Sequence record: NC_048016.1
DNA length: 64,000 nt
Reading direction: 5' to 3' (one strand)
Of the stretch, positions 8,644 through 25,253 are shown in pieces (positions within the stretch are counted from its first letter, which is position 1; each line of letters opens with the position of its first letter). Below the pieces are notes generated by a model. It was not told the origin of the DNA. It saw only the letters and a list, made by a program, of their open reading frames with translations, and made no database searches. Both the position numbers and the translations under genes were made by a program.

Positions 8644-8662
8644 TGAATAGGAGAGTCGCGCG

Positions 8663-9652
8663 ATGAACTTTACTTTGCGCTGGCGCAATGACAACACCAA
8701 ACCGGTTGTCGTGCGTATTTACCGCAGCACCACGGTCATCGACCCCACCAAGCTACCGGCCGCAATCGCGACCCTCAGTAACGGGGAGACCGAGTGGGTA
8801 GACAACACTGCACTTTACGGTGTTACCTACTACTACTTCACCACTGTCACTAACCCCGCAACCGGCAAAACGGTGAACGGGGTTAACACGACGTACACGA
8901 TTGAGCAACGGCGTGGCGTGGGACCAAACACCCTGCTGTTCGGCAGTGAAACACTGGGCTTCTACGGGGATGTGATTTATGAAGATCAGTTCCCACTGAG
9001 TGCGTTCCAGCAAAAGGTGCAGGATGCCCTCGCCCTTAACAGCAGCACGTTCTCACCATCCTACCGGTTACCGGTGAGTAAGTATATCCGTAACGGTAAG
9101 ATTCTCTACATCCCGGTCTCGCCGCTCACGACACGTTTAACGTGGGCGCAGCTGTATGCCGCCGGCATGGTGTACGGCCGTGATGACAATGGTCCGGCAA
9201 ATGGGCGTGGGGATTTACCTGCAGCTATTCAGGATGCGGGCTGTACGTGGAAAGGGGACAAATACCGGATTCGTTTGATGCGCGGCTTAACGGATGCGCC
9301 AACAGAACCAGCACTGGCGTTCGATGCGAAATACGACGGTGTGTCCCACGACACATCCGATCTTACCGGCTTCAATGAATTCAACGACCTGTTTTACAGT
9401 GTGCAGAACTTGTTCCCGCTGAAACGCCGGTTGGAGGGTGTGCGTTACGCCAGTCCGCTCACAACAACCAACAGCGCGTATGCTGATGGGTATCTGACGA
9501 TGGAGCACGATACCGCATCTAATAAAGCGTTGTCACGTGGCCAAGTCACCTCGCCAATGACGGCAGATTTACTGACCACGATTCGTTATCGTTTACACAC
9601 CTCAACCGTAACTGCTTGGGTGCCGGTTATTGAATTAGTGGAGGACTACTAA
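8663..9652 (+). CDS. putative virion/tail protein, cassette gene B2
   Basis: 329 aa; MNFTLRWRN; FNEFNDL and MEHD motifs shared with B1. Confidence 0.65.
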   Translation: MNFTLRWRNDNTKPVVVRIYRSTTVIDPTKLPAAIATLSNGETEWVDNTALYGVTYYYFTTVTNPATGKTVNGVNTTYTIEQRRGVGPNTLLFGSETLGFYGDVIYEDQFPLSAFQQKVQDALALNSSTFSPSYRLPVSKYIRNGKILYIPVSPLTTRLTWAQLYAAGMVYGRDDNGPANGRGDLPAAIQDAGCTWKGDKYRIRLMRGLTDAPTEPALAFDAKYDGVSHDTSDLTGFNEFNDLFYSVQNLFPLKRRLEGVRYASPLTTTNSAYADGYLTMEHDTASNKALSRGQVTSPMTADLLTTIRYRLHTSTVTAWVPVIELVEDY

Positions 9653-10551
9653 TGGGTATTAAATTGCAGTGGCCCTCCCAGAGCGCCAAAGGATTAAGTG
9701 CGATTGAGATTTATCGCACAACCGGTGTGACCCCGTCGCTTAACCGCAACAACTTGCCTGCCCCCTTGGCAACCCTTGCAGCGACAGCAACCGCGTACGA
9801 AGACACCACGGTGGTAGAAAAGACTGTCTACAACTATTGGGTCTGCAACGTGAAGAACGGTGAGCGTATCTTTACGGCCCCAATTCAACGGGGTTATTAT
9901 CTGGATACGGGTCCGGGGCCGACGGAGTTGAAGTACGGGAACTGGGATGCGGGTTACTTTGGCACCGTTGCCGTCAGTGACCTGTTTACCTTTCAGGAAA
10001 TGAACTCCCAACTGGGGATTTCTCTGTTCCAATACACGCCGGATTTCTATCACAAGTTTATCTTTAAAGGGCGCATTCTGTTCTACCCAAACATTCGGGT
10101 GATGGTTCAGACGTGGAGCAATGTCTACTTAGCGGGCTTAGCATGGGGCAGCAATGCGGTCGCCTACATTAAACCCAACGGTCCGGCAGACACCCCACAA
10201 GGTCGCACCGTCAGCAAGAATGGTCGAGCGTATAACGTCCGCTTGCCGTTCAGTGCGGAATACAGTGTGACCGGTGGCCCTACCCTCAGCCAAGATGCAA
10301 TTGCCAATTTGGGAGAGTGGCGAAACACGATGGAGCGGTTATTCCTCGTTCCTGGGACGATGTCGCGCTGGGGCAGTGCGCCGCCAGATTCCCCGAGTAA
10401 CACCTCGAGTCTCCAAACGACGATGTTTGCACAAGCCTACGGCACGGCTAATATCTGGGTGGAACTTGGGGGTGCGCCGCAGGCCATTACCACAAACACC
10501 CAAAACCAAGCGATGTCCACTATGCTGGTATTGGAATTGGTCTTACCGTAA
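9652..10551 (+). CDS. putative virion/tail protein, cassette gene C2
   Basis: 299 aa; MGIKLQWPSQ..IEIYR, LDTGPGP, terminal VLELVLP; start overlaps the upstream stop (TAATG). Confidence 0.65.
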   Translation: MGIKLQWPSQSAKGLSAIEIYRTTGVTPSLNRNNLPAPLATLAATATAYEDTTVVEKTVYNYWVCNVKNGERIFTAPIQRGYYLDTGPGPTELKYGNWDAGYFGTVAVSDLFTFQEMNSQLGISLFQYTPDFYHKFIFKGRILFYPNIRVMVQTWSNVYLAGLAWGSNAVAYIKPNGPADTPQGRTVSKNGRAYNVRLPFSAEYSVTGGPTLSQDAIANLGEWRNTMERLFLVPGTMSRWGSAPPDSPSNTSSLQTTMFAQAYGTANIWVELGGAPQAITTNTQNQAMSTMLVLELVLP

Positions 10552-10566
10552 CACAAATAAAAAGAA

Positions 10567-10606
10567 CTACTCTCCCCAAAGGGAGAGTAGCCTTTATTTC
10601 TTTTTT
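10567..10606. terminator. bidirectional terminator between convergent genes
   Basis: CTACTCTCCC-CAAA-GGGAGAGTAG with an A-run upstream and a T-run downstream. Confidence 0.8.
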
Positions 10607-10695
10607 CCACCACCGAGCAGACCGCCGACTGCGCCGACGACCGTCCCAACAGCAGAACCAACCCCACCCACGATGGCTGTGATGGGATCAGTCAC
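10594..10695 (-). CDS. possible 33-aa Gly/Val-rich micro-protein
   Basis: GTG-start ORF VTDPITAIVGGVGSAVGTVVGAVGGLLGGGKKK directly after the upstream stop; no clear RBS. Confidence 0.3.
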   Translation of the reverse strand: MTDPITAIVGGVGSAVGTVVGAVGGLLGGGKKK

Positions 10696-10699
10696 GGGC

Positions 10700-11209
10700 T
10701 TAGTTGAACCCGTTGAGTTCTCCGTTGGTGCCGGAGAGGTCGGTTTTGGCTTTGCTAATCGTCCACACCACAGCTTCACCGGGGAGAAATTTGGCGTGAC
10801 CGGCGTTGATAGCCACGGTCACGTCCGTTTTGGTTGCGTCTTCTGCGTTAGCATTAGAGGTGATGGTGATGTCAGACAGTGCCAGTGCATCGTCCGCGTG
10901 GTCTTGCTGGAGCATGGTGTTGAAATGCGCGAGCACTTCTTCATCCGTATCCCAGTTGGTCATTGAATCCTCAACCGGCATGTCGCCTTTGGCGTACGCC
11001 AGACGGTTGTAGGTCAGTTCTTTTGACCCAGCGAAGTTGGTGCTTGAACCTTTGGCTGTGATAGTCAGCTTGGTGTTCTTCGCATCTTCTTCAGCGGCTG
11101 CAACAACGGCAGCAAAGTCAACATCAGCCACGGTCAGTGGCGTCGGGAGGCTCGGGTTCGCTGCGTTAAACAGCTCAACCAACTGCTCCTGTGGGGTTTT
11201 AGTAGCCAT
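10700..11209 (-). CDS. putative virion structural protein (acidic, carries the shared N-terminal domain)
   Basis: 169 aa from MATKTPQEQ with RBS AGGGAAG; NTKLTITAKG...LTYNRL domain; ends LSGTNGELNGFN. Confidence 0.7.
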   Translation of the reverse strand: MATKTPQEQLVELFNAANPSLPTPLTVADVDFAAVVAAAEEDAKNTKLTITAKGSSTNFAGSKELTYNRLAYAKGDMPVEDSMTNWDTDEEVLAHFNTMLQQDHADDALALSDITITSNANAEDATKTDVTVAINAGHAKFLPGEAVVWTISKAKTDLSGTNGELNGFN

Positions 11210-11240
11210 CTCTCTTCCCTTTATAAAGTTGACAACGGTT

Positions 11241-11293
11241 GTCATAAAAAAGCCCAGTGGGTCAAAATAACGCAAGGCCCACTATAGTATGAC
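11241..11293. promoter_or_regulatory. divergent TATGAC motifs, candidate late (non-virion RNAP) promoters
   Basis: TATGAC on minus at 11241-11246 and on plus at 11288-11293; TATG is the established phiKZ late-promoter core. Confidence 0.4.
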
Positions 11294-11345
11294 CCGTATT
11301 TCCCGGGCAAAAAATAATCGAAAAGCTCACACAGAGGACAGTCTC

Positions 11346-11882
11346 ATGTTACGTTTTATTGCTGCATTTTTCGTTGCAATGTTGTTAGGGGGTTGCGCAC
11401 TTACCACAACCAATGGCCAGTTCTCGACGGCACCTGTCGCCCCAACGGACTTTGTAACGTACACCTGCACCGGTGCACAGGAGACCTTTGTCAACTGGCG
11501 ACCTGATGTGGCACAAGTTAAACTTTACCCGGTTGCCGTGACTGTTATCGACAACGGCAGCAATTGGGTAGCCACCTTCCCCGGTGGGAAAGTGGAATCG
11601 CCTCAGCTCTATAAAGATTTGCTCGGCAAAGTGGACGGCAGTGTTGACCTGTTACAAGGTACACGCTACTACCGCTTGAACACGACCCCGCCCACCTACT
11701 CGTACTCCACGGTTGACATGAGTGGGAACGGTTCGGGAGCCACCTTCTTTCGCTGTCAGGTAGGTACCGGTGACGCTGCTACTGCTGCTGCAACCCCTGC
11801 TTCTTCTCTTACTCCATCTGATGCTGCGCAAGCACCCGCATCTGCCCCTGCGGCTGTCGTAGCCCCGGTGGCGAACAAATAA
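11346..11882 (+). CDS. lipoprotein of unknown function
   Basis: MLRFIAAFFVAMLLGGC lipobox; RBS AGAGGA; Ala/Pro-rich C-terminal tail. Confidence 0.7.
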   Translation: MLRFIAAFFVAMLLGGCALTTTNGQFSTAPVAPTDFVTYTCTGAQETFVNWRPDVAQVKLYPVAVTVIDNGSNWVATFPGGKVESPQLYKDLLGKVDGSVDLLQGTRYYRLNTTPPTYSYSTVDMSGNGSGATFFRCQVGTGDAATAAATPASSLTPSDAAQAPASAPAAVVAPVANK

Positions 11883-11887
11883 AAGCA

Positions 11888-11927
11888 GTACCCCACTCCA
11901 ATGAGTGGGGTACCTTTCTTTTTTTAT
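11888..11927. terminator. bidirectional terminator
   Basis: GTACCCCACTC-CAAT-GAGTGGGGTAC plus a T-run, between convergent genes. Confidence 0.8.
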
Positions 11928-13429: not shown

Positions 13430-13463
13430 AATAAAAAGAAGAAAGGGTGCCCCGAAGGGCACC
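13430..13463 (-). terminator. rho-independent terminator ending the radical SAM operon
   Basis: On minus: GGTGCCC-TTCG-GGGCACC followed by a T-rich tract. Confidence 0.8.
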
Positions 13464-13467
13464 ACTG

Positions 13468-14109
13468 TTATTCTACCGACGGATTAAACTCCGCCGCGTC
13501 GAGTGAGGCGTAATCGCCCTGCTCCGCAAATGCACGGATACGGGTTTTGTACGCGGTCAACTGAACGTGCAGCTGTGCGTTACGTGCGACAATCAGAGAG
13601 TACAGCATCTCTGTGTCTTTCGCTTCCCACTCTTCCAGCGCTTGGTTATCGGCAGTCACCCAATACTCCGGCACGGTGTTCGTTTGCACGAAGCCGGCCA
13701 GGGTGGTCAGGGTCTCACCTGCGGTCTGGAACATGTGGTCTTTGTACGCAATGTCAGCCGTGACCGCTTCACCGTACGCTGCATTAGTGGCCTGAAGTTT
13801 CTTGGCCAGCAGAGTATAGCAATACGCTTTGGTCGACTGCAACTCTTTGAGGTAATCCTTCACCTGAATCCCCAACACGTCTTTGATAAACGTTTTGGTT
13901 TGGCGTAGGGTGTAGTTGGCTTCGAACTGGGTCTGCCCCTGCTCTTGCAACTGACGCAGTGCATCTTTCTCACTGAGTCCCTCTAAGAGTGCGTAGTGTA
14001 AACGCTTGGCCAGCGTGACATCGCCGTTGGGGTCAAAGAACAACCCGTTGCGGTCAATCTGGCCATCGCCGTTTTCAAACCGCGCTTTTATCTCGTCAGC
14101 ACTAAGCAT
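13468..14109 (-). CDS. DUF4376-like protein (tail-fibre associated)
   Basis: 213 aa; C-terminal HMFQT...YWVTADNQ...LY..IV.R...L...K.RI pattern resembles DUF4376. Confidence 0.6.
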   Translation of the reverse strand: MLSADEIKARFENGDGQIDRNGLFFDPNGDVTLAKRLHYALLEGLSEKDALRQLQEQGQTQFEANYTLRQTKTFIKDVLGIQVKDYLKELQSTKAYCYTLLAKKLQATNAAYGEAVTADIAYKDHMFQTAGETLTTLAGFVQTNTVPEYWVTADNQALEEWEAKDTEMLYSLIVARNAQLHVQLTAYKTRIRAFAEQGDYASLDAAEFNPSVE

Positions 14110-14636
14110 TCTTTCTCTCCCACGAATCCAACTTTGGTCAACATGTCATAGGACATGATTTCAAAGTCGATACGAAGATCCAGACGGTACTGCAAGTTCG
14201 GCAACGGCTGGTCATTTTCTTGGAACGCCTGCATGAACATCATGTCATCGAAGTAATGACACGCGCTCTCGGGGTTGCGCACCATCCAGACCGGGACATC
14301 CGGGAAGGACAGACACAGTGCCACCAGAGAATCACCGCCACGATCGATAGTGCCGGTACGCAGGATGTTTACCTTTGAAGCAGGGGCCGCCAGAATACGC
14401 GCTTCGAAACCCGGGTTACGCTTTTCGATTTCTGCTAACGAGTCGTGGCCGTTCTCCACGCACTGAATCGGCAGGACAACGTTAAGAGCAAAACGGTTAA
14501 TCAAACGCAGCCAGTGATCGTTGAAATCATCGGCAGGCACGATAGCGTGAATGTTAAACAGCTTATAATGCTGTAAGAACGCTTCGATTTTGCGACTATC
14601 GTACTTCGTAAAATTCTGGAGAAGCAGGCTTTTCAT
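14088..14636 (-). CDS. hypothetical protein in the radical SAM cassette
   Basis: 182 aa; overlaps both neighbours (41 and 22 nt). Confidence 0.6.
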   Translation of the reverse strand: MKSLLLQNFTKYDSRKIEAFLQHYKLFNIHAIVPADDFNDHWLRLINRFALNVVLPIQCVENGHDSLAEIEKRNPGFEARILAAPASKVNILRTGTIDRGGDSLVALCLSFPDVPVWMVRNPESACHYFDDMMFMQAFQENDQPLPNLQYRLDLRIDFEIMSYDMLTKVGFVGEKECLVLTR

Positions 14637-15993
14637 TCTTGAATTGTTCCTTGCGGTCAGTTTGTTCCACAGCCATGGTCATCTCACGGATGGCGGTGAC
14701 GTGTAAAGGCTGTTCTGCAGCTTCGCGGGTGAGTTTCTCTTCAACAGCAAAGTTGCGCTTCTGTTGGCACTGGTAACAGTTACAAACAGACTTGTCGTAC
14801 TGCGATTCGTACGACCCGAAACGTTGTTTCCACCACTGCGCCACTAAGAGCTTCGCGGTAGTCCAACCACACTGGCGACGTTCGCCGTGATACTCTTTAC
14901 GAGCGTCTTCTTCACCGTCGCCATTTTCATACGCCGCCGCCACGCACGAGGCACACAGGTGCTTCGCTGGGCAACCGATACACTGGTCAGGATACGACTT
15001 CCACTGTTCCTGAACTTCGGCCAGCAGTTTACCGCCGTCGGTGTTCACGATGGTTTGACCTTCGAGCTTACCGATGGCCTGACGGGTGGTTACCGTGGAC
15101 ATGAAGCGGTTACAACCGAAGATGTTACGGTCGAAGCCGAGACAAGTCATGTACACCGTGGTGCCGCAGTGCGGACGCAGACGTTGTGGGTCGTAGCGTA
15201 CAGAGTCATCATGGATGAGCTTCTCACGCCAGTCCGGGTTCCACAGTTGGTCAACATCCAGACCGTCCGGCAGCACGTGACCGATTTCAGAGTTCTGGTC
15301 TAAGTGCAGACCTTTCTCAATGAAATACTCCGCCACTTCGATGAACTGGTTGGCAATCTCGAGTGCCATCTGGCGCGGTAACACGTCTTCGAAAACGACG
15401 TTACCGTACAGACGACCGCCCCCGGTCACATCAATCAGCGACTTCATCCCAGCACCGTACTGCATCAGCGTTTCTTTCGTGAAGGTGGCTTTCACCCCAA
15501 TCTCACGAACACCGATTTCTTGCAGAAGCTTATAGCCGGCGACCGCTGCTTGGTAAGACCCTTGACGGGACGTGGTGAAGATACGGTACTTATCGTGGGT
15601 CTCGGGCAGACCATCGATAGAGACACCGATCGACAGGTAATCTTTCCAGCGATTCAGAATCTCCAGCGCCAGCGGTTTGTCAAACAACGTGCCGTTGGTG
15701 GAGATAGAGAACACGTAAGGCAGATTGTGCTTTTTGCACAGCTCTTCTGCGGTTTCGAAGGCCGCTTTCAGCAGCTTCGGCTGCATGAAGGGTTCGCCAC
15801 CGATGATATCGATGATGATACCGTCGATACCTTGGTTCTTCGAGAAGAAGCGATGTTTATCGCGATTAAAGCAGGCGTGAATAAAATCAACGACATCAGC
15901 GACTTTGTTATTACGCGGATACTTACGCTCGTAGCAATACTCACAGTCGAGGTTGCACGATAGGTTGGTGACTATCTGGTAGGTTGCATCCAT
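14596..15993 (-). CDS. radical SAM/SPASM-domain enzyme, probable CXXX-repeat peptide maturase
   Basis: 465 aa; CNLDCEYC (CxxxCxxC), IIGGEPF and STNG motifs; C-terminal Cys-rich SPASM-like region HCG...C...GCNRF...CIGCPAKHLCASC...CGW. Confidence 0.9.
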   Translation of the reverse strand: MDATYQIVTNLSCNLDCEYCYERKYPRNNKVADVVDFIHACFNRDKHRFFSKNQGIDGIIIDIIGGEPFMQPKLLKAAFETAEELCKKHNLPYVFSISTNGTLFDKPLALEILNRWKDYLSIGVSIDGLPETHDKYRIFTTSRQGSYQAAVAGYKLLQEIGVREIGVKATFTKETLMQYGAGMKSLIDVTGGGRLYGNVVFEDVLPRQMALEIANQFIEVAEYFIEKGLHLDQNSEIGHVLPDGLDVDQLWNPDWREKLIHDDSVRYDPQRLRPHCGTTVYMTCLGFDRNIFGCNRFMSTVTTRQAIGKLEGQTIVNTDGGKLLAEVQEQWKSYPDQCIGCPAKHLCASCVAAAYENGDGEEDARKEYHGERRQCGWTTAKLLVAQWWKQRFGSYESQYDKSVCNCYQCQQKRNFAVEEKLTREAAEQPLHVTAIREMTMAVEQTDRKEQFKNEKPASPEFYEVR

Positions 15994-16005
15994 CCCTATC
16001 TCCCC

Positions 16006-16890
16006 TTATTTTTTAATTGGATTAAGCCAGTTCATGATGTAACGGTAGCCGTGCTCACCGATGGCCAGTGCAATCTTGTTGCAGCCACGGTCCACGACCA
16101 TCTCAACGTTCTCAGGAACTTGCAGGTCGCCATTCGGTTGACTGACGATAATTTCACTACAGGCATTACACGCATCTTCTTCGAAGAACTTCTCGAGCTT
16201 GATGATGGTGTCACGCTTGTTAATGCGGTTGAGCTTACGCATGTTGTCTTGCAGACGCTCAAAGCCGTACACGAAGTTTAACACGTGGTCAGGCGACAGC
16301 ACTTTCTTCATCTGGTTATCGAACAGGTAGTTCATGCCGAGGAAACCAAGATGGTGAATGGCGTCTTGCATTTTCATCATGCCTTCGTGCCAGCGCATGT
16401 CCCCGATCTTCTCACGGGTTAACACTGACCAGAGGATAACGTTGTCCAGCTGGGCGATGACTTCAAACGCTTCGGTATCACCGGAACGAGCAAAGTCCAT
16501 TAAACCACGGGCATCATCTTCGTAACCGTCGATGGAGACCACAACACGATGGAAGGTTTTCAAAAACTCGACTTGCTCTAAACGTAACTTACGTCCGTTT
16601 GTGAAAAGATAGTGCACGGCAGAAGGACGTTCTACGCGCATCATCTCGACCGACTCGACGAGTTTACGGTAAGACAGTAACGGCTCACCCCCCGTCCAGA
16701 TGATCTCTTCCACACCGGGATTCTTTTTCAGTAACTCCATCATTGCCTCTTCATGGGTTTTACGAGACACGTCCCCTTTGACCATGTGAATCTCACCCGC
16801 ACAAAACGAACAATTGAGGTTACACTTCGACGTCAATGCTACGTTAATGGTCTTTGCAGGTGAGTAAACATCTTTACTTAACGTTCTCAT
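16006..16890 (-). CDS. second radical SAM protein (short C-terminus)
   Basis: 294 aa; CNLNCSFC, WTGGEPLL, FTNG, VVSIDG; only a short CNAC...GC tail. Confidence 0.85.
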   Translation of the reverse strand: MRTLSKDVYSPAKTINVALTSKCNLNCSFCAGEIHMVKGDVSRKTHEEAMMELLKKNPGVEEIIWTGGEPLLSYRKLVESVEMMRVERPSAVHYLFTNGRKLRLEQVEFLKTFHRVVVSIDGYEDDARGLMDFARSGDTEAFEVIAQLDNVILWSVLTREKIGDMRWHEGMMKMQDAIHHLGFLGMNYLFDNQMKKVLSPDHVLNFVYGFERLQDNMRKLNRINKRDTIIKLEKFFEEDACNACSEIIVSQPNGDLQVPENVEMVVDRGCNKIALAIGEHGYRYIMNWLNPIKK

Positions 16891-17800
16891 CCGTCATTCC
16901 GTACAGGCGACGTTGGAAAGAGAACAGTGGGTCGGTGTCTCGTACATCTTCACCCGCCTTTAACAGACGTGGTGAGCGATACGCATCGTACAGTGCGTTA
17001 AGAACGGATTGACGCTCACCCATGCGGATAAGGTCGTCCAGTTCAACCGGGGACGAAATAAACGGTTCCAGCGCAGCCTGTTGTTCGTCGGTGAACTCTT
17101 TCAGCTGTGACTGGAGCAGGAAGCGAATCAGTTTGCGATCATCCGCCGTGGAGTTCGGGACAGCGCCAAACTCAGTCTGACAGAGATAGGCCATCCACGG
17201 TTTACGGATGCGGAGTGTTTGCGCATGCGGGTCTGCGATGTAGACCCACTCTTGCTTCTCTGCATCCCATGCAAACTTATAACTAAACGCGAGTAAGTCT
17301 GCCAAGCAGTCGATATTCGCGGCTTCAAGGCCAGAGAACGGGTGATACATTTCACGGTCTTTCTCCACGCTTCCAGTGCCGGCTTCCACCAGTTTGAATA
17401 AGTGGGACCAGCTTCCGCAGTAATCGCTGCTGTAGCTACGCACGCACACCGGACGCATGCCGAGTTCTTTAAAGGACTCGAACATCAGTTCCAGTGGTGC
17501 ACTATAGTTCAGTACCGAATCTGTGAAAAAATACTTGTCGTTGACAAGCTTCCCGGTAAAACCAGAACCGCCTAAGGCGAACTGAATGGATTTCACGTTC
17601 AGCTTGCCCACCGTGGTCGCATCAATCACGGTGTACTCTTTTTTCGTAAAGTTGCGACCGCGAAGCTTAGGCCATTCAAACTGGTCCATGGCAATCAGCC
17701 GCAGCTCGTCGTTGATGTGTGCGTTAACACTGTCCGGTGACGAGATGTGAATTGGGTAATTCATGCTCGTGCGGTACGCAAGATGATCGTTACTCTTCAT
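16874..17800 (-). CDS. hypothetical protein in the radical SAM cassette
   Basis: 308 aa; RBS AGGGGA; 17-nt overlap with radical SAM 2; no family recognised. Confidence 0.7.
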   Translation of the reverse strand: MKSNDHLAYRTSMNYPIHISSPDSVNAHINDELRLIAMDQFEWPKLRGRNFTKKEYTVIDATTVGKLNVKSIQFALGGSGFTGKLVNDKYFFTDSVLNYSAPLELMFESFKELGMRPVCVRSYSSDYCGSWSHLFKLVEAGTGSVEKDREMYHPFSGLEAANIDCLADLLAFSYKFAWDAEKQEWVYIADPHAQTLRIRKPWMAYLCQTEFGAVPNSTADDRKLIRFLLQSQLKEFTDEQQAALEPFISSPVELDDLIRMGERQSVLNALYDAYRSPRLLKAGEDVRDTDPLFSFQRRLYGMTDENVK

Positions 17801-17812
17801 TAGGTTCCCCTG

Positions 17813-18022
17813 TTAACTCGGGAAGGAGACTGATTTCGCACCGCCTGAGCTACTCCAGCTACAGGTTCCGCCGCAGTTGTACGCGCCAGCACGAATCCCA
17901 CCCAAGTTGTTGGTGTTGTTACACGTTCCACGGTTGGCGATATAATCAACCGCCTGTCCCGTGGTAATATAGCGTTCGATGCTCGCCACGCGGTTACCGA
18001 TGTCTTTCAAGCTTACTGCCAT
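17813..18022 (-). CDS. short precursor-like peptide (leader plus truncated Cys core)
   Basis: 69 aa; MAVSLK leader and CGGTCSWS motif homologous to the two long peptides; RBS AGGAG. Confidence 0.75.
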   Translation of the reverse strand: MAVSLKDIGNRVASIERYITTGQAVDYIANRGTCNNTNNLGGIRAGAYNCGGTCSWSSSGGAKSVSFPS

Positions 18023-18031
18023 AGCCTACTC

Positions 18032-18460
18032 CTACGGTCCAGAACAGCCTGCTCCACAACTCCCGCCACAGCCACTACCGCAACTTCCCGAGCACCCGCC
18101 AGAACATTTGCCTGAACAGTTACCCGAGCATGTGCCAGAACAACCGCCGGAGCAGCCGCCGCCACAGTTACCGCCACAGCTGCCACTACAACCACCGGTG
18201 CAGCTAGATGAACAGTTGCCCGAACAGGATGACGAACACCCAGACGAGCAGTTACCCGTACAGCCACCAGAACAGCCGTTACCGCACGTCCAGCTACAAG
18301 AGCCGTTACAGTGCAGTGCCGCTGGGGTGAAACCGTTGAGTAAATCAGCATTATTAGTAGTGCGTCCACCGATGTAGTTTTGCACGCCTGCTTCAGTTTT
18401 TAGTGCGGTGTTCTCAATATTGACAACACGGTCACGCACCGATTTTAATGAAATCGCCAT
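18032..18460 (-). CDS. CXXX-repeat Cys/Ser/Gly-rich precursor peptide (23 perfect repeats)
   Basis: 142 aa = 50-aa leader + 23 x C-X-X-X; RBS AGGAG. Confidence 0.9.
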   Translation of the reverse strand: MAISLKSVRDRVVNIENTALKTEAGVQNYIGGRTTNNADLLNGFTPAALHCNGSCSWTCGNGCSGGCTGNCSSGCSSSCSGNCSSSCTGGCSGSCGGNCGGGCSGGCSGTCSGNCSGKCSGGCSGSCGSGCGGSCGAGCSGP

Positions 18461-18468
18461 TTCCGCTC

Positions 18469-18858
18469 CTAAGGGCTGCTACAACCAGCACTGCAGTTAC
18501 TGCTACAGGTGCCAGAGCAACCGCTAGAGCAGCTGCTGCCACATGAACCTGAACAGCCGCTTGAACAGCCACCAGAACACGAGGATGAGCAACCTCCCCC
18601 GCAACCACCAGAACACGAGCCCGAACAGTTACCTGTACACACGCCGCTACAGCTTCCTGAGCAGCTCGAGCAACCGTGACTACAACCTGACGAACACGTC
18701 CAACTGCACGACCCGTTACAACGGGCCCACGTATCAGGTTGGCCTGCCAATAGATTCGCATTGTGAACTTTGCTGTTCACCTGCCCCTCTACGGACGCGC
18801 CGGTTGCTGCTTGGACTCGGTCAAGACGGGCACTTAGTTCTTTAAGTGATATCGCCAT
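18469..18858 (-). CDS. CXXX-repeat Cys/Ser/Gly-rich precursor peptide (21 Cys)
   Basis: 129 aa = 46-aa leader + 20 x CXXX + one CXX; RBS AAGGGAAGG. Confidence 0.9.
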   Translation of the reverse strand: MAISLKELSARLDRVQAATGASVEGQVNSKVHNANLLAGQPDTWARCNGSCSWTCSSGCSHGCSSCSGSCSGVCTGNCSGSCSGGCGGGCSSSCSGGCSSGCSGSCGSSCSSGCSGTCSSNCSAGCSSP

Positions 18859-18878
18859 TACCTTCCCTTTTTAATAAG

Positions 18879-18912
18879 ACACGGGCACTCGCCATATAGA
18901 CGAGGCCCGTGT
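18879..18912 (-). promoter_or_regulatory. stem-loop upstream of the precursor peptides
   Basis: ACACGGGC/GCCCGTGT plus CTCG/CGAG stem; loop contains TATG on the minus strand; only a weak U-tract. Confidence 0.45.
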
Positions 18913-18921
18913 GTAATTATA

Positions 18922-20121
18922 TTAACGTGAACCGGCATCAGCCTGTACATCGTCACGTGTGGTCAAGTTGGCGTTGACGTGCACGTTTGCCTGAACCACG
19001 CCGCCATACTGCTTGTGCAGGTACTGGGTGTGTGGATCGGCGGCAGACAGGTGGTTAGCGAGCGTCTGGTTAACACTGGCGATGTTGCCCTCGGTCGTGG
19101 TGACACGACGGGTCAGTGCGGTCAGGTCAACACGCAGCTGGTCAATCTGCTGCTGTGCGTCACCGGCTCCGGACTTGAGGTCATCAATCTGGTCTTGCAA
19201 CCCAACGGCCGTTTGCTTCAACTCATTCACGGTTTTCTGTAACGTCAATACCAGTGAATTGAGGTTGGCCACAATCAACGTCATCTTCTGGTAGTTTTGG
19301 TCTACCGTGTTCAGTTGGTCGTTGAAGGTGGTCAGCGAACTGACGATGGCATCAATGCGCCCACCCAGTGCCGTATCAGCAGCCTTAAGGTCGCCAATCT
19401 GGACGAGGGTTGCATCGATAGCTGCCTGCACGCCGGCAATCAACGCACGGATTTCGGTTGCGGTCAAACCATCAATATCGTGGATATCAAGGTTGTGCAC
19501 GTTACCCGTGGCATTGATGTGGGCATTCAGCGCGTCCAAGAAGTTATTCTTGATGTCGCCGATGATGTCTTTGATTTTCTCAAGCTGAACGGCATCGCCT
19601 GAACCAATCGCATCCAGAATACCCGAGAGCAGGGTAATGACGTATTCAAAACCAAAGATATCGCCAACGTCTTTAAACGCCGGGGCACCCGGTAGCGTAT
19701 CCGGGAAATCGATTAAGTCGGCAAAGTTCACCTTCTTATTATCAATGCCCAGAATCGCAATCGCATTTTCAATCGCAGTCACGTTCGCAGACATTGGCCC
19801 ACCGACAACCTGAGCGGTCACGATGATGTCTGTTGGAATGCTGCTGTTGGTCACTACAACTGCCATCACGACTTCTTTGTTGCCCGAGAGCTTCATGTAG
19901 GCCGGATGAGCGAAAATCAGTTCGTAGTCGGTACCACGTTTATACGGCGTGGTGGGCGAGTTCGTGGCACGCAGTTTAAAACTGTCTGCGTAAAACGGAC
20001 CTGCCGGAAAAGCAAAAGACCGGTTAACTTTACCGGAACCCAAGACCACGGGGATACTTACCGCGTTCGATGTCAGAGTTCCTTTAAGGTCAAGCGGATA
20101 CTGGAAAATAATATCACTCAT
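18922..20121 (-). CDS. coiled-coil tail-fibre-like virion protein
   Basis: About 399 aa from MSDIIF; N-terminal GPFY...DYELIF domain shared with the giant fibres; long heptad region; NHLSAADPHTQY fibre motif. Confidence 0.7.
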   Translation of the reverse strand: MSDIIFQYPLDLKGTLTSNAVSIPVVLGSGKVNRSFAFPAGPFYADSFKLRATNSPTTPYKRGTDYELIFAHPAYMKLSGNKEVVMAVVVTNSSIPTDIIVTAQVVGGPMSANVTAIENAIAILGIDNKKVNFADLIDFPDTLPGAPAFKDVGDIFGFEYVITLLSGILDAIGSGDAVQLEKIKDIIGDIKNNFLDALNAHINATGNVHNLDIHDIDGLTATEIRALIAGVQAAIDATLVQIGDLKAADTALGGRIDAIVSSLTTFNDQLNTVDQNYQKMTLIVANLNSLVLTLQKTVNELKQTAVGLQDQIDDLKSGAGDAQQQIDQLRVDLTALTRRVTTTEGNIASVNQTLANHLSAADPHTQYLHKQYGGVVQANVHVNANLTTRDDVQADAGSR

Positions 20122-20165
20122 CTCCAAGCTCCCTTACGAGAGGGCATCCCTGCCCTCACCAGTGG

Positions 20166-23100
20166 TTAAGACGACAAATTACTCGTTGGGATTAACATAA
20201 GATTGATGGTTACCTCACCCAGCGTGACCATCTTTCCGTCAGGCCCGAAGAACTTCGAGGCGACAACGACTTCCCGGTTCGACCCATTCGCGCGCTCCAA
20301 GAACGGCGGACAGTAGCTGATTTCCGGAGCCACCACACTCACCACCCCTGTGGTGTCTGCCACCGGAACATAGACATGGGAGACGGTCTCCAACACGTTG
20401 AGGTTACCGGACTGCGTACCTTGGTCTGAGGTGAATGCCACCACCGACGTCCCACTCGAGCGGATTAACTCGCGTTGGGTTGTCCCATTCCAATCGTAGG
20501 CAATAAAAGCAATGTGGCAGATGGTCCCACCGGCGGTACCTGCCTGAATGACTTCGATCCCAACCGTGTGCTGCCCGTTAGACACCGGGAAGTCCTGGGT
20601 GGCGAGCGCGTTTGACCCTTTCGAGGTAATGCCGGATGCCACACGCACGCCATCAATGTAGACGTGACACATGTCATCCACCGCAAACTTAAGTCGCAGC
20701 GTGCCCCCGGTGGTGGTCACTTTGAACTTGGTCGCATACGTACCGTAGCCCGGAATCGTCCGTGGGTTGATGTCAATCCAGATAAGCCCCAACGCATTTG
20801 CATCCGGGTTCTCCGCTGCTGTCACGGCCACTGCACGGGCAGGAGCCCAGAACAGCTCAGGCAACACTGCCCCGGAATACCACGGCTGGGAAGCCGGGAC
20901 ATAACGGTTAATCAGCGGACGAGACAACAATGATCCCACCGCCAGTGACAGTGCGGACTGACCCACGTACCCATCACCCGAGGTCGCAATCGGTAACGGT
21001 TCCAGCAGACCGAGCGGTGACTCTGCCCGTTCACGCACCACGTTCGAGCCGTGGCTGTACGCAACCCCCTCATGCTCCTCTAACTGACGTACCGCCCCCA
21101 GACGTTTCACCGGGGTAATGTTCTCCTCGATGATACGGCTGCTGTCGGTCTTGACGTAACCCACGTAAAGCAGGTTACTGCTGTCAGGGTAACGTTCGGT
21201 ACTGACCCGGTACCGCGCCTTCGTGGTGCCTTCGTCTGGGTAGACTTCAGCGTGGAAATAGAAGGTCTGGTTTCGGTAGTCACTGAACGCCGACGAGAAG
21301 TCAATGCTGTACTGGTCGAGCACGTACTCTTTCGAGTTAATGAACAGTCGCTCTGACTCGGTCAGGTAAAGAATCCACCCTTCCGCCGTCTTCACGCCCG
21401 CCAACACCACCGGTTGCGCATTCGCCGGGGAACCAAACGGACTGGCCATGAAGTCCGCAATCGGATACGCGTCGCCTGAGGAGAACACCGGGTCCAGTTT
21501 GAAATACGAATTCACCATCGCATTCAAATCTTTCACCCACACCCACGTGTTTGGGCTGTACGTTGGTCGGTCAAGCCCCAGTGCCCCGGTGGAGCTGGTC
21601 CACTGGTTACCGGTCAGGGTCAACACCGCACGGAAGTTCAATGCACCCCCATTCCCGACTTGGGCGATACGCAGCACGGACGGCAGATAGAGCACAAACT
21701 TCTGCCCATCGTTGGACACGAGTTGCGGCTGACCAAAGCGGCGGTCTTTTCCACCAAAGCTGAAATCCAATCCGACGTTGGCGATGTTCAAGTCAAGGTC
21801 GTTCTGGAACGTCAACAGTTGGAGGGTGCTGGAGCTAAACGCGAGAATCCCGTTGGAAACCGACGGGTACATCACAAAGTAGTAATGGTCGATTTTATTC
21901 ACACCGTCTACAAAGCGTTGTGCCGTGGCCTGTCCCAAGAAGAGCTGCTGCGGTGTCCCAATCGCAAAGCCCCACAGTGCGACATACAGTTTCCCGATTT
22001 GGTCAGCGGCCATCAGTCGCTCGGATGCGTAGCCGTTCGCTGCACCCGCTGGGGCGTTAGCCAACATGATACTGCGGACTTTCGCCCACTCGGTATCGTT
22101 CAGCGTCAGTTTGTCGGCGGTAAAGTTCGGGTTCCCGGTCACGTTCTTGTACTGCACCGTTTCAGGCTTAGTAAAGAAGCACCCGTTCAGCGTGCCTTTA
22201 TCTGCCGCATTCACTTTCACCATCGCCAGCTGGGACATCGCAGCGTAGGTTGCCGTGGTGATAACACGCCGGTTGTTGGTTGGACCAAAGCCCCCGTAAC
22301 CCGGTACGTCGTAATCCGTGTCGGTTGAATACAACACCTCAACGCACAACGCATCCTTGGTACCGGTGAGCCAGATGGCTTTAGAGTCCCCACCGAAGAA
22401 CAGCGGGTAGGCCATGCCAGAGGCGTACACAGACCCACGTCCTTGGTCGAGTTTGGTGGTGTTACCCACAACCGCACCTGTCGTCACATCGGCTGACAAC
22501 GAGTCGTAATGGTCACCCCCGCCCGGAACACCCATCGTGACTATCTGCACCGGGACATCACTGTCATTACCAACCGAAAGCACAGCGACCTTGTCATCGT
22601 GGTGTGCCACAAAGGCACGCTGGTTGGCTTGGGTCCCTGTCCACTTCAGTGGGTAGTTCGTGGTCAACAAATCCACGCCGGTTTTGTACTTCGCACCGGT
22701 ATCCAGTAACTGCAGTGGGAAGATTTCCGGGTGCTCCAGTGTCACCGTCAGGGTATCGAAGTCGAGCGTGAATGTCGTGTACCAGTTCTTGAAGCTCAAT
22801 GACTCGGTTGCTTTCGCCAGCCAAATCGTTGGCGTCATTGCCACCCGTAACACTTCATCCTCTTGCCCCAACACCCGGTTACACGTTGGCCCGTGCACCA
22901 GATTGCGCCCTACCGTGAAGGTACTGAGTGCGGCTGGGCTGATGTACGCTACCCGGTCGGTCTCGGTGTTGGCGGTGTCGTACCCCCCTTCGGCACGGAG
23001 CAGTAACCACGAACCTGCCACGCCCTTCATCCCGTTCAAGGTTTCAAGGGTAAAGGCCACGTCTTGTGCGCCGATGCTATTGAGTGAAACCGACGCCAAG

Positions 23101-25253
23101 GCCACACGGTAACTGTCGTTCGCCAGTCGGGTGCGCAGCAGATACACTTTACTGCCGTAGACCACGAGGTCATCCGTTTCCCCGGCGGGCACCATTGCCG
23201 CATTACTGCCTGCCACATCCATGATGGTCGGGAACGTCACTCGCACCACATTCAGGTGGCGATTGTGGTCGGCTGTCCCGGCGAGGTCAACGAGGTAATA
23301 CGCCCCGTCGCTGCCTAAACAGATAAGGGCATCCTGCCCCGGCACCACCACTGCACTGAGTGTCACCCCCGGGTACTTGGTGGTCATCCCGGCTGGCTGA
23401 TAGCGCTGTGAAGTTTGTTGGACGTTGCTGAGCGTGTTGTCGTCGTTAAAGGTACCGTAAGCGTAATAGATGTGGCGATCAGTCAGACCGTCCGTTCCGT
23501 TACGCAGAATATACAACCGGTCCCCTTCAAAACGCATCGCCCCGTAGAACTGGCTGTTGTTCTTGCCATACCCTTCGTAGTTACCCTGTGCCGGGATAGG
23601 CAGGAACCCGAGGTTGCCGTACGACGCCCCAATAACCGCCCACGTTGGAATCAGACCGTTGGCTTTGCTTTCCAAATCCGCCAAAGTCTTCTCAAAGAGA
23701 TACCCCTGTTTAGCCGTCACCACACGGTCTGTGCTGGCATCGATAATATCCCAGAGTAACACCAAGCCGGCTGCCGAAGAGCTGGCGTAGGGTACGTTGG
23801 TCACGTCTGCGAGGGTATGGGTGTGGTTGGTCAGGGATTTGTTGGCCACGGCGGCGGTTAACGCTTTGGTTACCGGCTTATCAAGCGGTGCGGTGTTCTG
23901 CATCTTCTCGACACCGACGTCCGCAGGCGTCAGGGTTAAGGTCTGGTCTGCATCAAAACCTTTGCCGTTGACGGTGTAAGTGTCATCGACGTAGTTCCCC
24001 AGCAAATCCCGCATCGCGGTAATACCCGCCTGTGAAATTGCATAACCGTCACTGAGTGAGGTACGGTTGGACGTGACCTTGATCAGACCCCGCACCCCCA
24101 CTGAGGCTTCGGGCAGGTTCGCTTCCAGACGGAACGGGGCGTAGGACTTGCCTGACCCGTAGACCTTCACGGTTTCCGTAGAGGACATGTACGCGTTAGC
24201 TGCTTTGAGTTTCACCTCGTGCAGGTACATCTCCACCATGTCGGGTGTAATCAAATACACCCCGTTGAAGACCGGAGCCAATGCATCAGGGCCCGAGTGC
24301 ACCATTAAGGTGTTCAGCCCCGCTGACATCTCCACCGCCACACCCGGGTTCGTGTTCGCACTGTCTGCGGTGAACCGTAAAGTCTTTTTGGTGGAGACCA
24401 ACACGTTCGGCCCTTTGAAGGTGATAACGTGGTCGTTGTTGGCGGTGGTGTACGTCAGGACATTGTTGTTGAGAACACGCAAGCGACCGAACACGTCATT
24501 AAACGCGGTGTCGTTACGCATCAGCAAATCAACGTGCTTTTGCTGCAAACCGGTTGTGGCCATCAGGGTCACGAGCTGGTCAATGGTGCGACCAAATGCC
24601 CGGGTGGCGTCCACGGCTTTATCCGTGACCTTCAAGGCCCCGATGTCATCCGCAGTGTACGAATGCCCGTGGGACTTCAGCAGGTGGTGCTGATACATCC
24701 CATCGTCGAACACTTTCTTGCCGGTTTGATAGATGAGCTCAGTGACTTCACTGTACGCGGCATCCATGTCCCCTGCCCGCTTAATCAGGCCCAAACGAAT
24801 GTCATTTAACGCGGAGACAATCTCATCGCGGGCAATGGCTTCGTCCAAGTCCTGTGGCGGGTCGATAGCTGGAATGGTCGGCGCATAGCGCATCAACGCA
24901 GACCAGTCTTCGTTACGGGGGTCTTTCAGGTCACTGCTGACCAGCCATTTGCCAATCTCGCTCTGCGGTACGCGGTAATCACGCCCCACAGCGTAGATGC
25001 TGTATTTGATGGCATCGTGGTTCAGCAGCATTATCCCGCCAAACACCGCGGCTTGGAATGCCTCAGCGGCTTCTTTGTAATAGTAGCCGAGGTAATAGTC
25101 CATGCCCTCGATAAGCGGGACATCATTTAAATCGGTGATAACCAGCCCGGTGCGGTAGAAAGGGCCTTCCGGCGGAATAACCGTATTGAAACGGTTTGGG
25201 AACGTCGAGACTTTCAACGTGCCTTCAAACTGGGCCGGGGTTTCCGTCGCCAT
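20166..25253 (-). CDS. giant tail fibre / tail-associated virion protein
   Basis: 1695 aa; shared N-terminal domain, NTAPLDKPV...NHTHT fibre motifs, C-terminal beta-sandwich (PA14-like) segment. Confidence 0.75.
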   Translation of the reverse strand: MATETPAQFEGTLKVSTFPNRFNTVIPPEGPFYRTGLVITDLNDVPLIEGMDYYLGYYYKEAAEAFQAAVFGGIMLLNHDAIKYSIYAVGRDYRVPQSEIGKWLVSSDLKDPRNEDWSALMRYAPTIPAIDPPQDLDEAIARDEIVSALNDIRLGLIKRAGDMDAAYSEVTELIYQTGKKVFDDGMYQHHLLKSHGHSYTADDIGALKVTDKAVDATRAFGRTIDQLVTLMATTGLQQKHVDLLMRNDTAFNDVFGRLRVLNNNVLTYTTANNDHVITFKGPNVLVSTKKTLRFTADSANTNPGVAVEMSAGLNTLMVHSGPDALAPVFNGVYLITPDMVEMYLHEVKLKAANAYMSSTETVKVYGSGKSYAPFRLEANLPEASVGVRGLIKVTSNRTSLSDGYAISQAGITAMRDLLGNYVDDTYTVNGKGFDADQTLTLTPADVGVEKMQNTAPLDKPVTKALTAAVANKSLTNHTHTLADVTNVPYASSSAAGLVLLWDIIDASTDRVVTAKQGYLFEKTLADLESKANGLIPTWAVIGASYGNLGFLPIPAQGNYEGYGKNNSQFYGAMRFEGDRLYILRNGTDGLTDRHIYYAYGTFNDDNTLSNVQQTSQRYQPAGMTTKYPGVTLSAVVVPGQDALICLGSDGAYYLVDLAGTADHNRHLNVVRVTFPTIMDVAGSNAAMVPAGETDDLVVYGSKVYLLRTRLANDSYRVALASVSLNSIGAQDVAFTLETLNGMKGVAGSWLLLRAEGGYDTANTETDRVAYISPAALSTFTVGRNLVHGPTCNRVLGQEDEVLRVAMTPTIWLAKATESLSFKNWYTTFTLDFDTLTVTLEHPEIFPLQLLDTGAKYKTGVDLLTTNYPLKWTGTQANQRAFVAHHDDKVAVLSVGNDSDVPVQIVTMGVPGGGDHYDSLSADVTTGAVVGNTTKLDQGRGSVYASGMAYPLFFGGDSKAIWLTGTKDALCVEVLYSTDTDYDVPGYGGFGPTNNRRVITTATYAAMSQLAMVKVNAADKGTLNGCFFTKPETVQYKNVTGNPNFTADKLTLNDTEWAKVRSIMLANAPAGAANGYASERLMAADQIGKLYVALWGFAIGTPQQLFLGQATAQRFVDGVNKIDHYYFVMYPSVSNGILAFSSSTLQLLTFQNDLDLNIANVGLDFSFGGKDRRFGQPQLVSNDGQKFVLYLPSVLRIAQVGNGGALNFRAVLTLTGNQWTSSTGALGLDRPTYSPNTWVWVKDLNAMVNSYFKLDPVFSSGDAYPIADFMASPFGSPANAQPVVLAGVKTAEGWILYLTESERLFINSKEYVLDQYSIDFSSAFSDYRNQTFYFHAEVYPDEGTTKARYRVSTERYPDSSNLLYVGYVKTDSSRIIEENITPVKRLGAVRQLEEHEGVAYSHGSNVVRERAESPLGLLEPLPIATSGDGYVGQSALSLAVGSLLSRPLINRYVPASQPWYSGAVLPELFWAPARAVAVTAAENPDANALGLIWIDINPRTIPGYGTYATKFKVTTTGGTLRLKFAVDDMCHVYIDGVRVASGITSKGSNALATQDFPVSNGQHTVGIEVIQAGTAGGTICHIAFIAYDWNGTTQRELIRSSGTSVVAFTSDQGTQSGNLNVLETVSHVYVPVADTTGVVSVVAPEISYCPPFLERANGSNREVVVASKFFGPDGKMVTLGEVTINLMLIPTSNLSS

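Follow-up and report, generated by a model that had tools for sequence, protein, structure and literature searches.

The 64,000-nucleotide stretch of DNA analysed here (the window) belongs to the genome of Erwinia phage Wellington (NC_048016.1; 244,950 bp), a jumbo phage of the genus Wellingtonvirus whose host is the fire-blight bacterium; record coordinates are obtained by adding 124,000 to those of the window. At 13468-18858 it contains eight open reading frames (ORFs), all on the minus strand: three paralogues (pepA, pepB and pepC), two radical S-adenosylmethionine (SAM) enzymes (gp179 and gp178) and the accessory genes gp180, gp177 and gp176. We consider that the products of pepA, pepB and pepC probably make up a tail-fibre tip in split form, which the two radical SAM enzymes cross-link covalently, probably through thioethers; this reading is given a probability of about 0.6. 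The ORF calls confirmed the positions, the strand and the dense packing described in an earlier note on this DNA, the genes of the cluster overlapping or standing 8-12 nt apart. The region between 13400 and 19000 matches the Wellington record at 100% identity, and is 98.8% identical to that of phage Kwan and 82% identical to that of pEa_SNUABM_11.

The three paralogues have 21, 23 and 3 Cys, respectively. The product of pepA (129 aa; 18469..18858) consists of an N-terminal segment of about 46 aa (MAISLKELSARL...NANLLAGQPDTWAR), the junction CNGSCSWTC and a C-x3 ladder, with 19 Cys spacings of four residues and one of three. The same architecture was found in pepB (142 aa; 18032..18460; gp182 in RefSeq), where all 22 of the 22 spacings are of four residues, while pepC (69 aa; 17813..18022; gp181) contains the N-terminal segment and the C.G.CSW junction, without the ladder. 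The segment shared by the three proteins starts with MA[IV]SLK and continues with N-x-x-L-x-G and then C-x-G-x-C-S-W. The positions between the Cys of the pepA and pepB ladders are nearly all Ser, Gly, Thr or Asn, and the cores have a single Lys and neither Asp nor Glu. Searches with family models showed that pepA and pepC belong to phrog_6085 (7e-28 and 7e-25, respectively), and that pepA (23.7 bits) and pepB (24.4 bits) pass the cut-off of 20 bits of the repeat model TIGR04114, to which pepC had no match in the NCBIfam search. The range TIGR04114-TIGR04119, given in the earlier note as that of the CXXX-repeat systems, was correct.

Several observations indicate that these are genuine protein-coding genes. 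The ladders of pepA and pepB use all six Ser codons and both Cys codons, a diversity which shows that selection maintains the repeat in the protein and that it is no simple repeat of the DNA. Each of the peptide genes is preceded by a canonical Shine-Dalgarno site (GGGAAGG for pepA and AGGAG for pepB), and a six-frame translation of the window revealed such Cys runs in the pepA and pepB ORFs only. Orthologues of pepA are present in phage SPN3US and in the loci L004-L008 and L168 (L numbers designate loci of the comparative set, L002 being SPN3US). Each of the jumbo relatives examined (SPN3US, L004, L006 and L168) has exactly three paralogues, namely an A-type, a B-type and a short, ladderless C-type protein, each of them orthologous from phage to phage. 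A DNA-level artefact or a chance ORF was therefore rejected as the origin of the repeat, on the basis of the synonymous codon diversity, the Shine-Dalgarno sites and the type-specific conservation of the orthologues. The reference annotations do not reflect these genes. In RefSeq pepA is not annotated, gp183 being called in another frame (18432-18761) without a Shine-Dalgarno site, and gp182 (18032-18439) begins seven codons late relative to pepB. In SPN3US the three orthologues (130, 134 and 68 aa; L002 4094-5123) are likewise unannotated, and the sole annotation there is a wrong-frame ORF, gp166.

The larger of the two radical SAM enzymes, gp178 (465 aa; 14596..15993), carries the motif CNLDCEYC, with the CX3CX2C cysteines at C13, C17 and C20, and seven C-terminal Cys in a SPASM pattern (C276, C294, C338, C341, C347, C350 and C375). 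All of these Cys are invariant in 14 aligned sequences, so that the SPASM-like clusters that had been read from the letters alone are borne out. The best NCBIfam matches of gp178 were TIGR04115 (113.8 bits; cut-off 350) and PapB, NF047865 (107.7 bits; cut-off 340), both below the cut-off, followed at lower scores by the geopeptide, QhpD, HxsB, SCIFF and CcpM maturases. The check by profile search that the earlier note had proposed thus gave a divided result: pepA and pepB passed TIGR04114, while gp178 stayed under the TIGR04115 cut-off and pepC was not matched. In the PDB, the best sequence match was CteB (5wgg; 1e-9). The protein starts right at its Cys motif, and its residue 12 aligns to residue 106 of CteB, without the N-terminal recognition element (RRE) domain. 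No RRE/PqqD match to Pfam or NCBIfam was found among the eight cluster proteins.

The smaller enzyme, gp179 (294 aa; 16006..16890; Pfam Radical_SAM, 1.2e-14), has its CX3CX2C motif (CNLNCSFC) at residues 23-30 and conserved C241, (C244) and C270 near the C-terminus, which do not amount to a full SPASM domain. Its best NCBIfam matches are peptide maturases, all far under the cut-off, and its best PDB match is SkfB (6efn; E-value 8e-6). The anSME, YydG and other non-thioether families also occur among the weak matches of the enzymes. Altogether, the sequence comparisons support the grouping of gp178 and gp179 with radical SAM/SPASM maturases that modify peptides or proteins. [quoted passage not shown] In a 284-kb jumbo viral contig (L011, 7134-9194) the small and the big enzyme are fused into one protein of 686 aa, and this Rosetta-stone fusion argues that the two act together. 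A separate observation concerns the Wellington-like locus L168 (3492-11239), whose module contains four radical SAM genes (390, 370, 277 and 412 aa) along with the genes for three Cys-ladder proteins, gp177-like and gp180-like proteins, DUF1353 and a GH108 endolysin.

Homologues of gp178 were found in 67 phage records, every one of them from a SPN3US-like jumbo phage; the hosts are Erwinia, Salmonella, Cronobacter, Escherichia and Proteus. When IMG/VR was scanned with an alignment of the big radical SAM enzyme, at least 302 viral stretches were returned, and 80 of them were taken for locus analysis. In 68 of these 80 loci the radical SAM gene has an ORF with a long C-x(1-4) run no more than 2.2 kb away, with a median gap of 742 bp; in Wellington, pepA and pepB stand about 2 kb upstream of gp178 in the same strand run. 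The co-occurrence of enzymes and peptides in other genomes, on which the earlier note had made its proposal depend, was thus observed, and the enzyme-substrate pairing that we infer from it is as well supported as synteny allows. The loci fall into two clades, the first with big enzymes at least 31% identical to gp178 and including Wellington, and the second with enzymes about 25-28% identical to it. Loci of clade 1 always contain a second, small radical SAM enzyme and a gp180-like protein.

The strongest evidence on the nature of the ladder came from the members of clade 1 outside the jumbo phages with split proteins, in which the Cys ladder forms the C-terminal end of a tail-fibre protein. 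In the P2-like locus L009, a 384-aa tail-collar fibre (PHROG E-values 1e-52 to 1e-55) ends in ...GCNGCSGSCSGSC... and is encoded after baseplate V/W/J/I and before sheath and tube. A 401-aa collagen-like fibre in L012, with matches to tail and minor-tail PHROGs and to phrog_6085 (residues 270-357), ends in ...DAETLNGQAPDYYRCANGCSWTCSSGC..., and ladder-bearing fibres of 255 and 247 aa are present in L010 and L013. The 284-kb contig L011 encodes a 451-aa fibre (tail fibre, 2.7e-32) with phrog_6085 at residues 356-444, and in L003 a protein of 236 aa joins a tail-fibre N-terminal domain directly to the phrog_6085 segment. In the lambda-like locus L169, a 273-aa fibre that follows GpJ ends in ...DAEKLEGKTGSYYRCTGCTWTCMTGC..., and after it come a gp180-like protein, the small and the big radical SAM enzymes, tail assembly chaperones and an endolysin. 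The fibre-fused loci keep the gp180-like protein and both radical SAM enzymes, and the modules are flanked by baseplate J/I or GpJ on one side and by sheath, lysis or tail-assembly-chaperone genes on the other. Furthermore, the pepC profile matched the fibre C-termini of L012, L013, L010 and L003 (E-values 1e-10 to 1e-14), which indicates that what looks like a leader in the Wellington peptides is homologous to the part of these fibres where the shaft meets the ladder. The earlier note took the three proteins for leader-plus-core precursors; the shared N-terminal segment and the ladders of pepA and pepB stand, but the proteins are probably three short tip subunits with a fibre-junction N-terminus.

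Genomic context in Wellington itself is of the same kind. Immediately upstream of the cluster are gp185 and gp184, and downstream of it are a GH108 endolysin and a DUF1353 gene annotated as a tail assembly chaperone. The 1695-aa gp185 (20166..25253, minus strand) is homologous to gp168 of SPN3US, which is a tail protein from the phiKZ gp131 paralogue family and is located at the baseplate periphery, possibly on fibres (PMC5105663). The 401-aa gp184 (18922..20127, minus strand; phrog_2163, 1e-101) is a structural protein of the virion that resembles tail-collar fibres and has a long coiled coil (Pfam matches at residues 225-390); the annotation of its SPN3US orthologue, gp167, reads putative virion structural protein, and its homologues adjoin the module in L004 and L168. 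In L004, the neighbouring fibres carry Peptidase_S74.

The tail context extends to clade 2, which includes true TIGR04115 members (362-498 bits). Its Cys-repeat proteins have 170-660 aa and an N-terminal domain other than that of clade 1, and their genes are preceded by those for baseplate J/I and tail-collar fibres and followed by those for holin and endolysin. The enzymes that pass TIGR04115 in L028, L056, L017 and L097 (radical SAM genes at about 7900-9240 or 9803-11239) all lie in phage or prophage tail modules, and in L056 the neighbour of the radical SAM gene belongs to phrog_2163, the family of Wellington gp184. Eighteen loci of the clade-2 system from bacterial genomes or metagenome-assembled genomes gave a similar picture: among their 25 commonest neighbour PHROGs, every annotated family is a tail family (baseplate wedge, tail fibre, tail collar fibre and minor tail among others), apart from the radical SAM family phrog_1802 itself. 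What has been catalogued as a "bacterial" CXXX-repeat system may therefore be for the most part a feature of phage tails. In clade-2 loci, a conserved small protein of about 100 aa is encoded immediately upstream of the radical SAM gene, which it overlaps (L056 7616-7909; L017 7594-7902; L028 7568-7897; L021 7601-7900; L076 6909-7184). No PHROG or Pfam match was found for the members from L056 and L017, and the protein may be a recognition partner, the counterpart of gp180.

Among the accessory genes, gp180 (308 aa; 16874..17800; phrog_8030) is the one retained across clade 1. Profile comparison with the proteins of about 250 aa encoded in the fibre-fused loci gave an hhalign probability of 97.5% (E-value 6.5e-12), although plain BLASTP found no match to L3_264 and L4_322, so that profile methods were required. 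With 102 clusters at 50% identity among 1.84e9 representative proteins, the family is small but real, and by sequence conservation gp180 is the third conserved non-substrate member of the core module, beside both radical SAM enzymes. Its AlphaFold2 (AF2) model (pLDDT 83; pTM 0.80) combines a curved sheet at the N-terminus with a helical bundle at the C-terminus; no match to it was found in the PDB (best E-value 0.07), and BFVD returned solely the orthologue of phage Asesino. The lack of a PDB match led us to discard the assignment of gp180 as a recognisable RRE, protease or chaperone. From its conservation, gp180 may be a substrate-handling partner, possibly supplying the recognition that the RRE-less radical SAM enzymes do not have.

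The two remaining genes are more restricted. Homologues of gp177 (182 aa; 14088..14636; phrog_7988) occur only in Wellington, L002, L004-L008 and L168, which are the jumbo versions with separate small tip proteins. Its AF2 model (pLDDT 86), an alpha/beta partial barrel, matched nothing in the PDB significantly; the likeness to TIM barrels and to the QueE core was not significant (E-value 0.007 or higher; TM 0.4-0.5), and no claim is drawn from it. The nearest of these non-significant matches include the QueE radical SAM core, yet gp177 has no Cys motif; judged from the model, it could be a degenerate radical SAM-like domain. The 213-aa gp176 (13468..14109; phrog_8169) is present in the SPN3US-like clade only. 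The earlier note had called it DUF4376-like. The Pfam search did not detect DUF4376 in the Wellington protein itself; the orthologues in L005 and L006 pass the family model (43.5 and 41.6 bits; cut-off 25), so that the assignment holds by orthology.

These results are combined in the following model. The products of pepA, pepB and pepC would be short distal subunits of a baseplate fibre, and their N-terminal 35-50 residues would represent the last piece of the fibre shaft, a heptad-like stretch followed by NA-x-x-L-x-G...[YF]-x-C-x-G-x-C-S-W-x-C. This segment would dock onto the fibre, the coiled-coil protein gp184 being the proposed and probable proximal partner, and would double as the recognition segment that presents the ladder to the enzymes. 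The action of gp178 and gp179 on the Cys-Ser/Gly ladder would take place in the host cytoplasm, before assembly, with the assistance of gp180, which is proposed because neither radical SAM enzyme has a recognisable RRE. The likeliest chemistry would be many cross-links from Cys sulphur to carbon, since the top-scoring characterised relatives (leaving TIGR04115 aside: PapB, SCIFF/CteB, QhpD and SkfB) form thioethers; the acceptor cannot be Asp or Glu, because the cores contain neither. A floppy, low-complexity tail would thereby become a compact, stapled tip that resists protease and reduction and is kept on the virion, with gp177 and gp176 as putative lineage-specific helpers of the split, three-subunit version. 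The two long and one short paralogues of the jumbo phages could make a heterotrimeric tip. The analysis shows the gene content, the family relationships, the co-occurrence, the fusion of ladder and fibre in relatives and the position in tail modules; from these we infer where the proteins are in Wellington (the virion), that the enzymes act on the ladder, that thioethers form, and what gp180, gp177 and gp176 do. The wider proposal, that P2-like, lambda-like and phiKZ-like jumbo phages build some of their fibre tips from a Cys-x3 ladder that phage-encoded radical SAM enzymes cross-link into a poly-thioether rod, is put forward tentatively, at slightly less than even odds.

A number of points weigh against a cross-linked fibre tip. 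The published SPN3US proteomes used annotations without these ORFs and offer no direct virion evidence for pepA, pepB or pepC; as the ORFs are missing or misframed in both the Wellington and the SPN3US annotations, those proteomes could not have detected them, and the cores of pepA and pepB are in addition nearly devoid of tryptic sites. The free-standing short proteins of jumbo phages could have been co-opted for another role, and the model does not account for the ladderless pepC. With no Asp or Glu in the cores, PapB-type Cys-Asp chemistry cannot apply. Both radical SAM enzymes score far below every curated family cut-off, the gp180 and gp177 models gave no informative fold match, and the conserved stem-loop between gp184 and the peptide genes (described below) means that co-transcription with the fibre genes is not assured.

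The module has the outline of a RiPP cluster by the general criterion, a conserved N-terminal segment and a ladder encoded beside maturase-type enzymes. The three proteins might accordingly be free RiPPs, from which leaders of 46-50 residues are cut off and cross-linked Cys/Ser/Gly cores are freed at lysis, or act intracellularly as a toxin, signal or anti-competitor peptide. This would account for the leader-like and core-like layout in three paralogues, as in many RiPP clusters, for the origin of the enzymes in RiPP-maturase families and for the separate small genes of the jumbo clade. We nevertheless regard it as unlikely: NCBIfam, Pfam and PHROG searches of the cluster found no peptidase, exporter or transporter, or immunity gene, the supposed leader is homologous to the segment that links ladder and fibre shaft in other phages, the module is always in tail-fibre regions, and a core of 80-90 residues with 21-23 Cys far exceeds known sactipeptides and ranthipeptides. 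The fibre-fused ladders, the tail modules and the missing peptidase, transporter and immunity genes together favour a tip on the virion over a free peptide. The earlier note had left the choice between a virion component and an effector; the former, specifically as a tail-fibre tip, is favoured, and the latter is disfavoured by the fibre-fused relatives in baseplate and fibre modules.

Two further explanations keep the ladder in the fibre. The tip could be structural and Cys-rich while relying on other chemistry, such as metal binding or disulfides formed after release, with the radical SAM enzymes performing, for example, Cys-to-formylglycine conversion (anSME), epimerisation (YydG) or C-C cross-linking. 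The presence of anSME, YydG and further non-thioether families among the weak matches, the missing Asp/Glu acceptors and the occurrence of two different radical SAM enzymes, suggestive of two chemistries, are in agreement with it, but the top-scoring characterised relatives are thioether formers and the Cys period, kept strictly in loci that are very divergent, fits a modification of the Cys residues, and we judge this alternative improbable. The ladder might otherwise be a transient assembly device, that is, an intramolecular or trans-acting chaperone or a cap for fibre trimerisation (cf. Peptidase_S74 and T4 gp38/gp57A) that is removed from, or absent in, the mature virion. Fibre C-termini are the classical place of chaperone domains, the fibres next to the L004 module carry Peptidase_S74, and DUF1353 and Phage_tail_APC chaperone genes are adjacent. 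However, two iron-sulphur (Fe-S) enzymes for a disposable segment are hard to rationalise and no protease domain is associated with the ladder, so that a transient device is given little credence. PapB-type Cys-Asp chemistry was considered separately and rejected, the cores having no acidic residues.

The cluster is bounded by two RNA structures. The terminator that the earlier note had placed at about 13450 was recovered as a hairpin followed by a T-run at 13446..13463 (minus strand; dG -17 kcal/mol, z -4.0), an intrinsic terminator that closes the cluster. At the other end, a strong stem-loop with a U-rich tract is located between gp184 and pepA (18862..18925, minus strand; dG -26.5 kcal/mol, z -6.1), and SPN3US and L006 have a stem-loop of different sequence at the same position, between the gp184 side and the peptide genes. 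The element may terminate transcription in part or stabilise the RNA, and so adjust how much fibre is made relative to tip and enzymes; it may lower or separate the expression of the genes downstream. The label of late operon given in the earlier note is suggested by the structural neighbours. A sigma-70 promoter scan returned 5 sites where 8.4 were expected and was uninformative; phiKZ-like phages transcribe with their own RNA polymerases. Outside the cluster, a perfect bidirectional terminator hairpin with a stem of 11-12 bp and T-runs on both strands was observed at 11887-11914, between the DUF1353 gene and the plus-strand ORF that converges on it (11289-11882; in the annotation gp172, at window positions 11346-11882).

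Should the cross-linked tip prove true, it would join radical SAM chemistry of the RiPP type to phage host recognition, two fields so far separate, and would give a biological role to a radical SAM target family that has been catalogued for more than 10 years without one. It would be the first case of a virion adhesion organelle that enzymes cross-link covalently, and the "bacterial" TIGR04114/TIGR04115 systems would be phage or prophage tail parts. Virion maturation would then depend on Fe-S enzymes, and fibre function could depend on the Fe-S and SAM supply of the host and on oxygen. Some of the fibre density that has no assignment as yet in SPN3US-like jumbo phages would possibly be explained, and a natural, genetically encoded and hyper-cross-linked rod would offer a scaffold for protein engineering. 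Proteomic and genetic screens have been blind to these small genes, which are missed or misframed in the Wellington and SPN3US references. SPN3US has an existing genetic system, so the question is directly testable there. In the literature covered, which left most subscription journals outside the search, we found no account of this system, nor of a tail-fibre link for the Wellington clade or for true TIGR04115.

Comparison with known systems places the Wellington module between RiPP maturation and virion stabilisation. As regards the latter, the HK97 capsid isopeptide chainmail, Peptidase_S74 and T4 gp57A/gp38 serve the same goal, a stable and correctly folded virion or fibre structure, and share the neighbourhood of fibre and chaperone genes; their mechanisms are autocatalytic or non-covalent, and none uses a dedicated Fe-S radical enzyme. 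QhpD is a radical SAM/SPASM enzyme that installs several Cys thioethers in QhpC, the gamma subunit of quinohemoprotein amine dehydrogenase and thus a structural subunit of a larger complex, and its model TIGR03906 is among the matches of gp178 (2e-18). The relationship is nevertheless distant (66 bits; cut-off 453), the acceptors of QhpD are Asp and Glu, and QhpD/QhpC has no phage or fibre context. SCIFF/CteB and SkfB provide the solved structures closest by sequence to gp178 and gp179, respectively (5wgg and 6efn), but only the radical SAM core aligns, and CteB has an N-terminal RRE where gp178 has none.

The freyrasin system PapB/PapA, of the ranthipeptide type, is nearer, since PapB is the second-best family match to gp178, with an alignment over the whole enzyme including SPASM; the C-x3 units are repeated in both substrates, and there is no N-terminal extension ahead of the radical SAM motif. 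PapB works on C-x3-D/E units, in which it joins each Cys to the Asp or Glu four residues further on. PapA differs in being a short, secreted-type peptide and not a fibre part, and the Wellington cores have no Asp/Glu acceptor. The closest likeness is to the TIGR04114/TIGR04115 system, which was catalogued in silico in NCBIfam and is to our knowledge uncharacterised: in both, a CX3CX2C enzyme with a 7-Cys SPASM domain is encoded beside a protein with Cys at every fourth residue. At 113.8 bits against the curated cut-off of 350, gp178 belongs to a sister clade and is not an equivalog. The Wellington clade differs in the second, smaller radical SAM enzyme and the gp180-like protein, and its substrates have the C.G.CSW.C junction, whereas those encoded in true TIGR04115 loci carry a domain of some 100 aa at the N-terminus. 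Relative to the catalogued CXXX-repeat radical SAM system, the new elements are therefore the two radical SAM enzymes with gp180, the distinct junction motif and the three-way split in jumbo phages.

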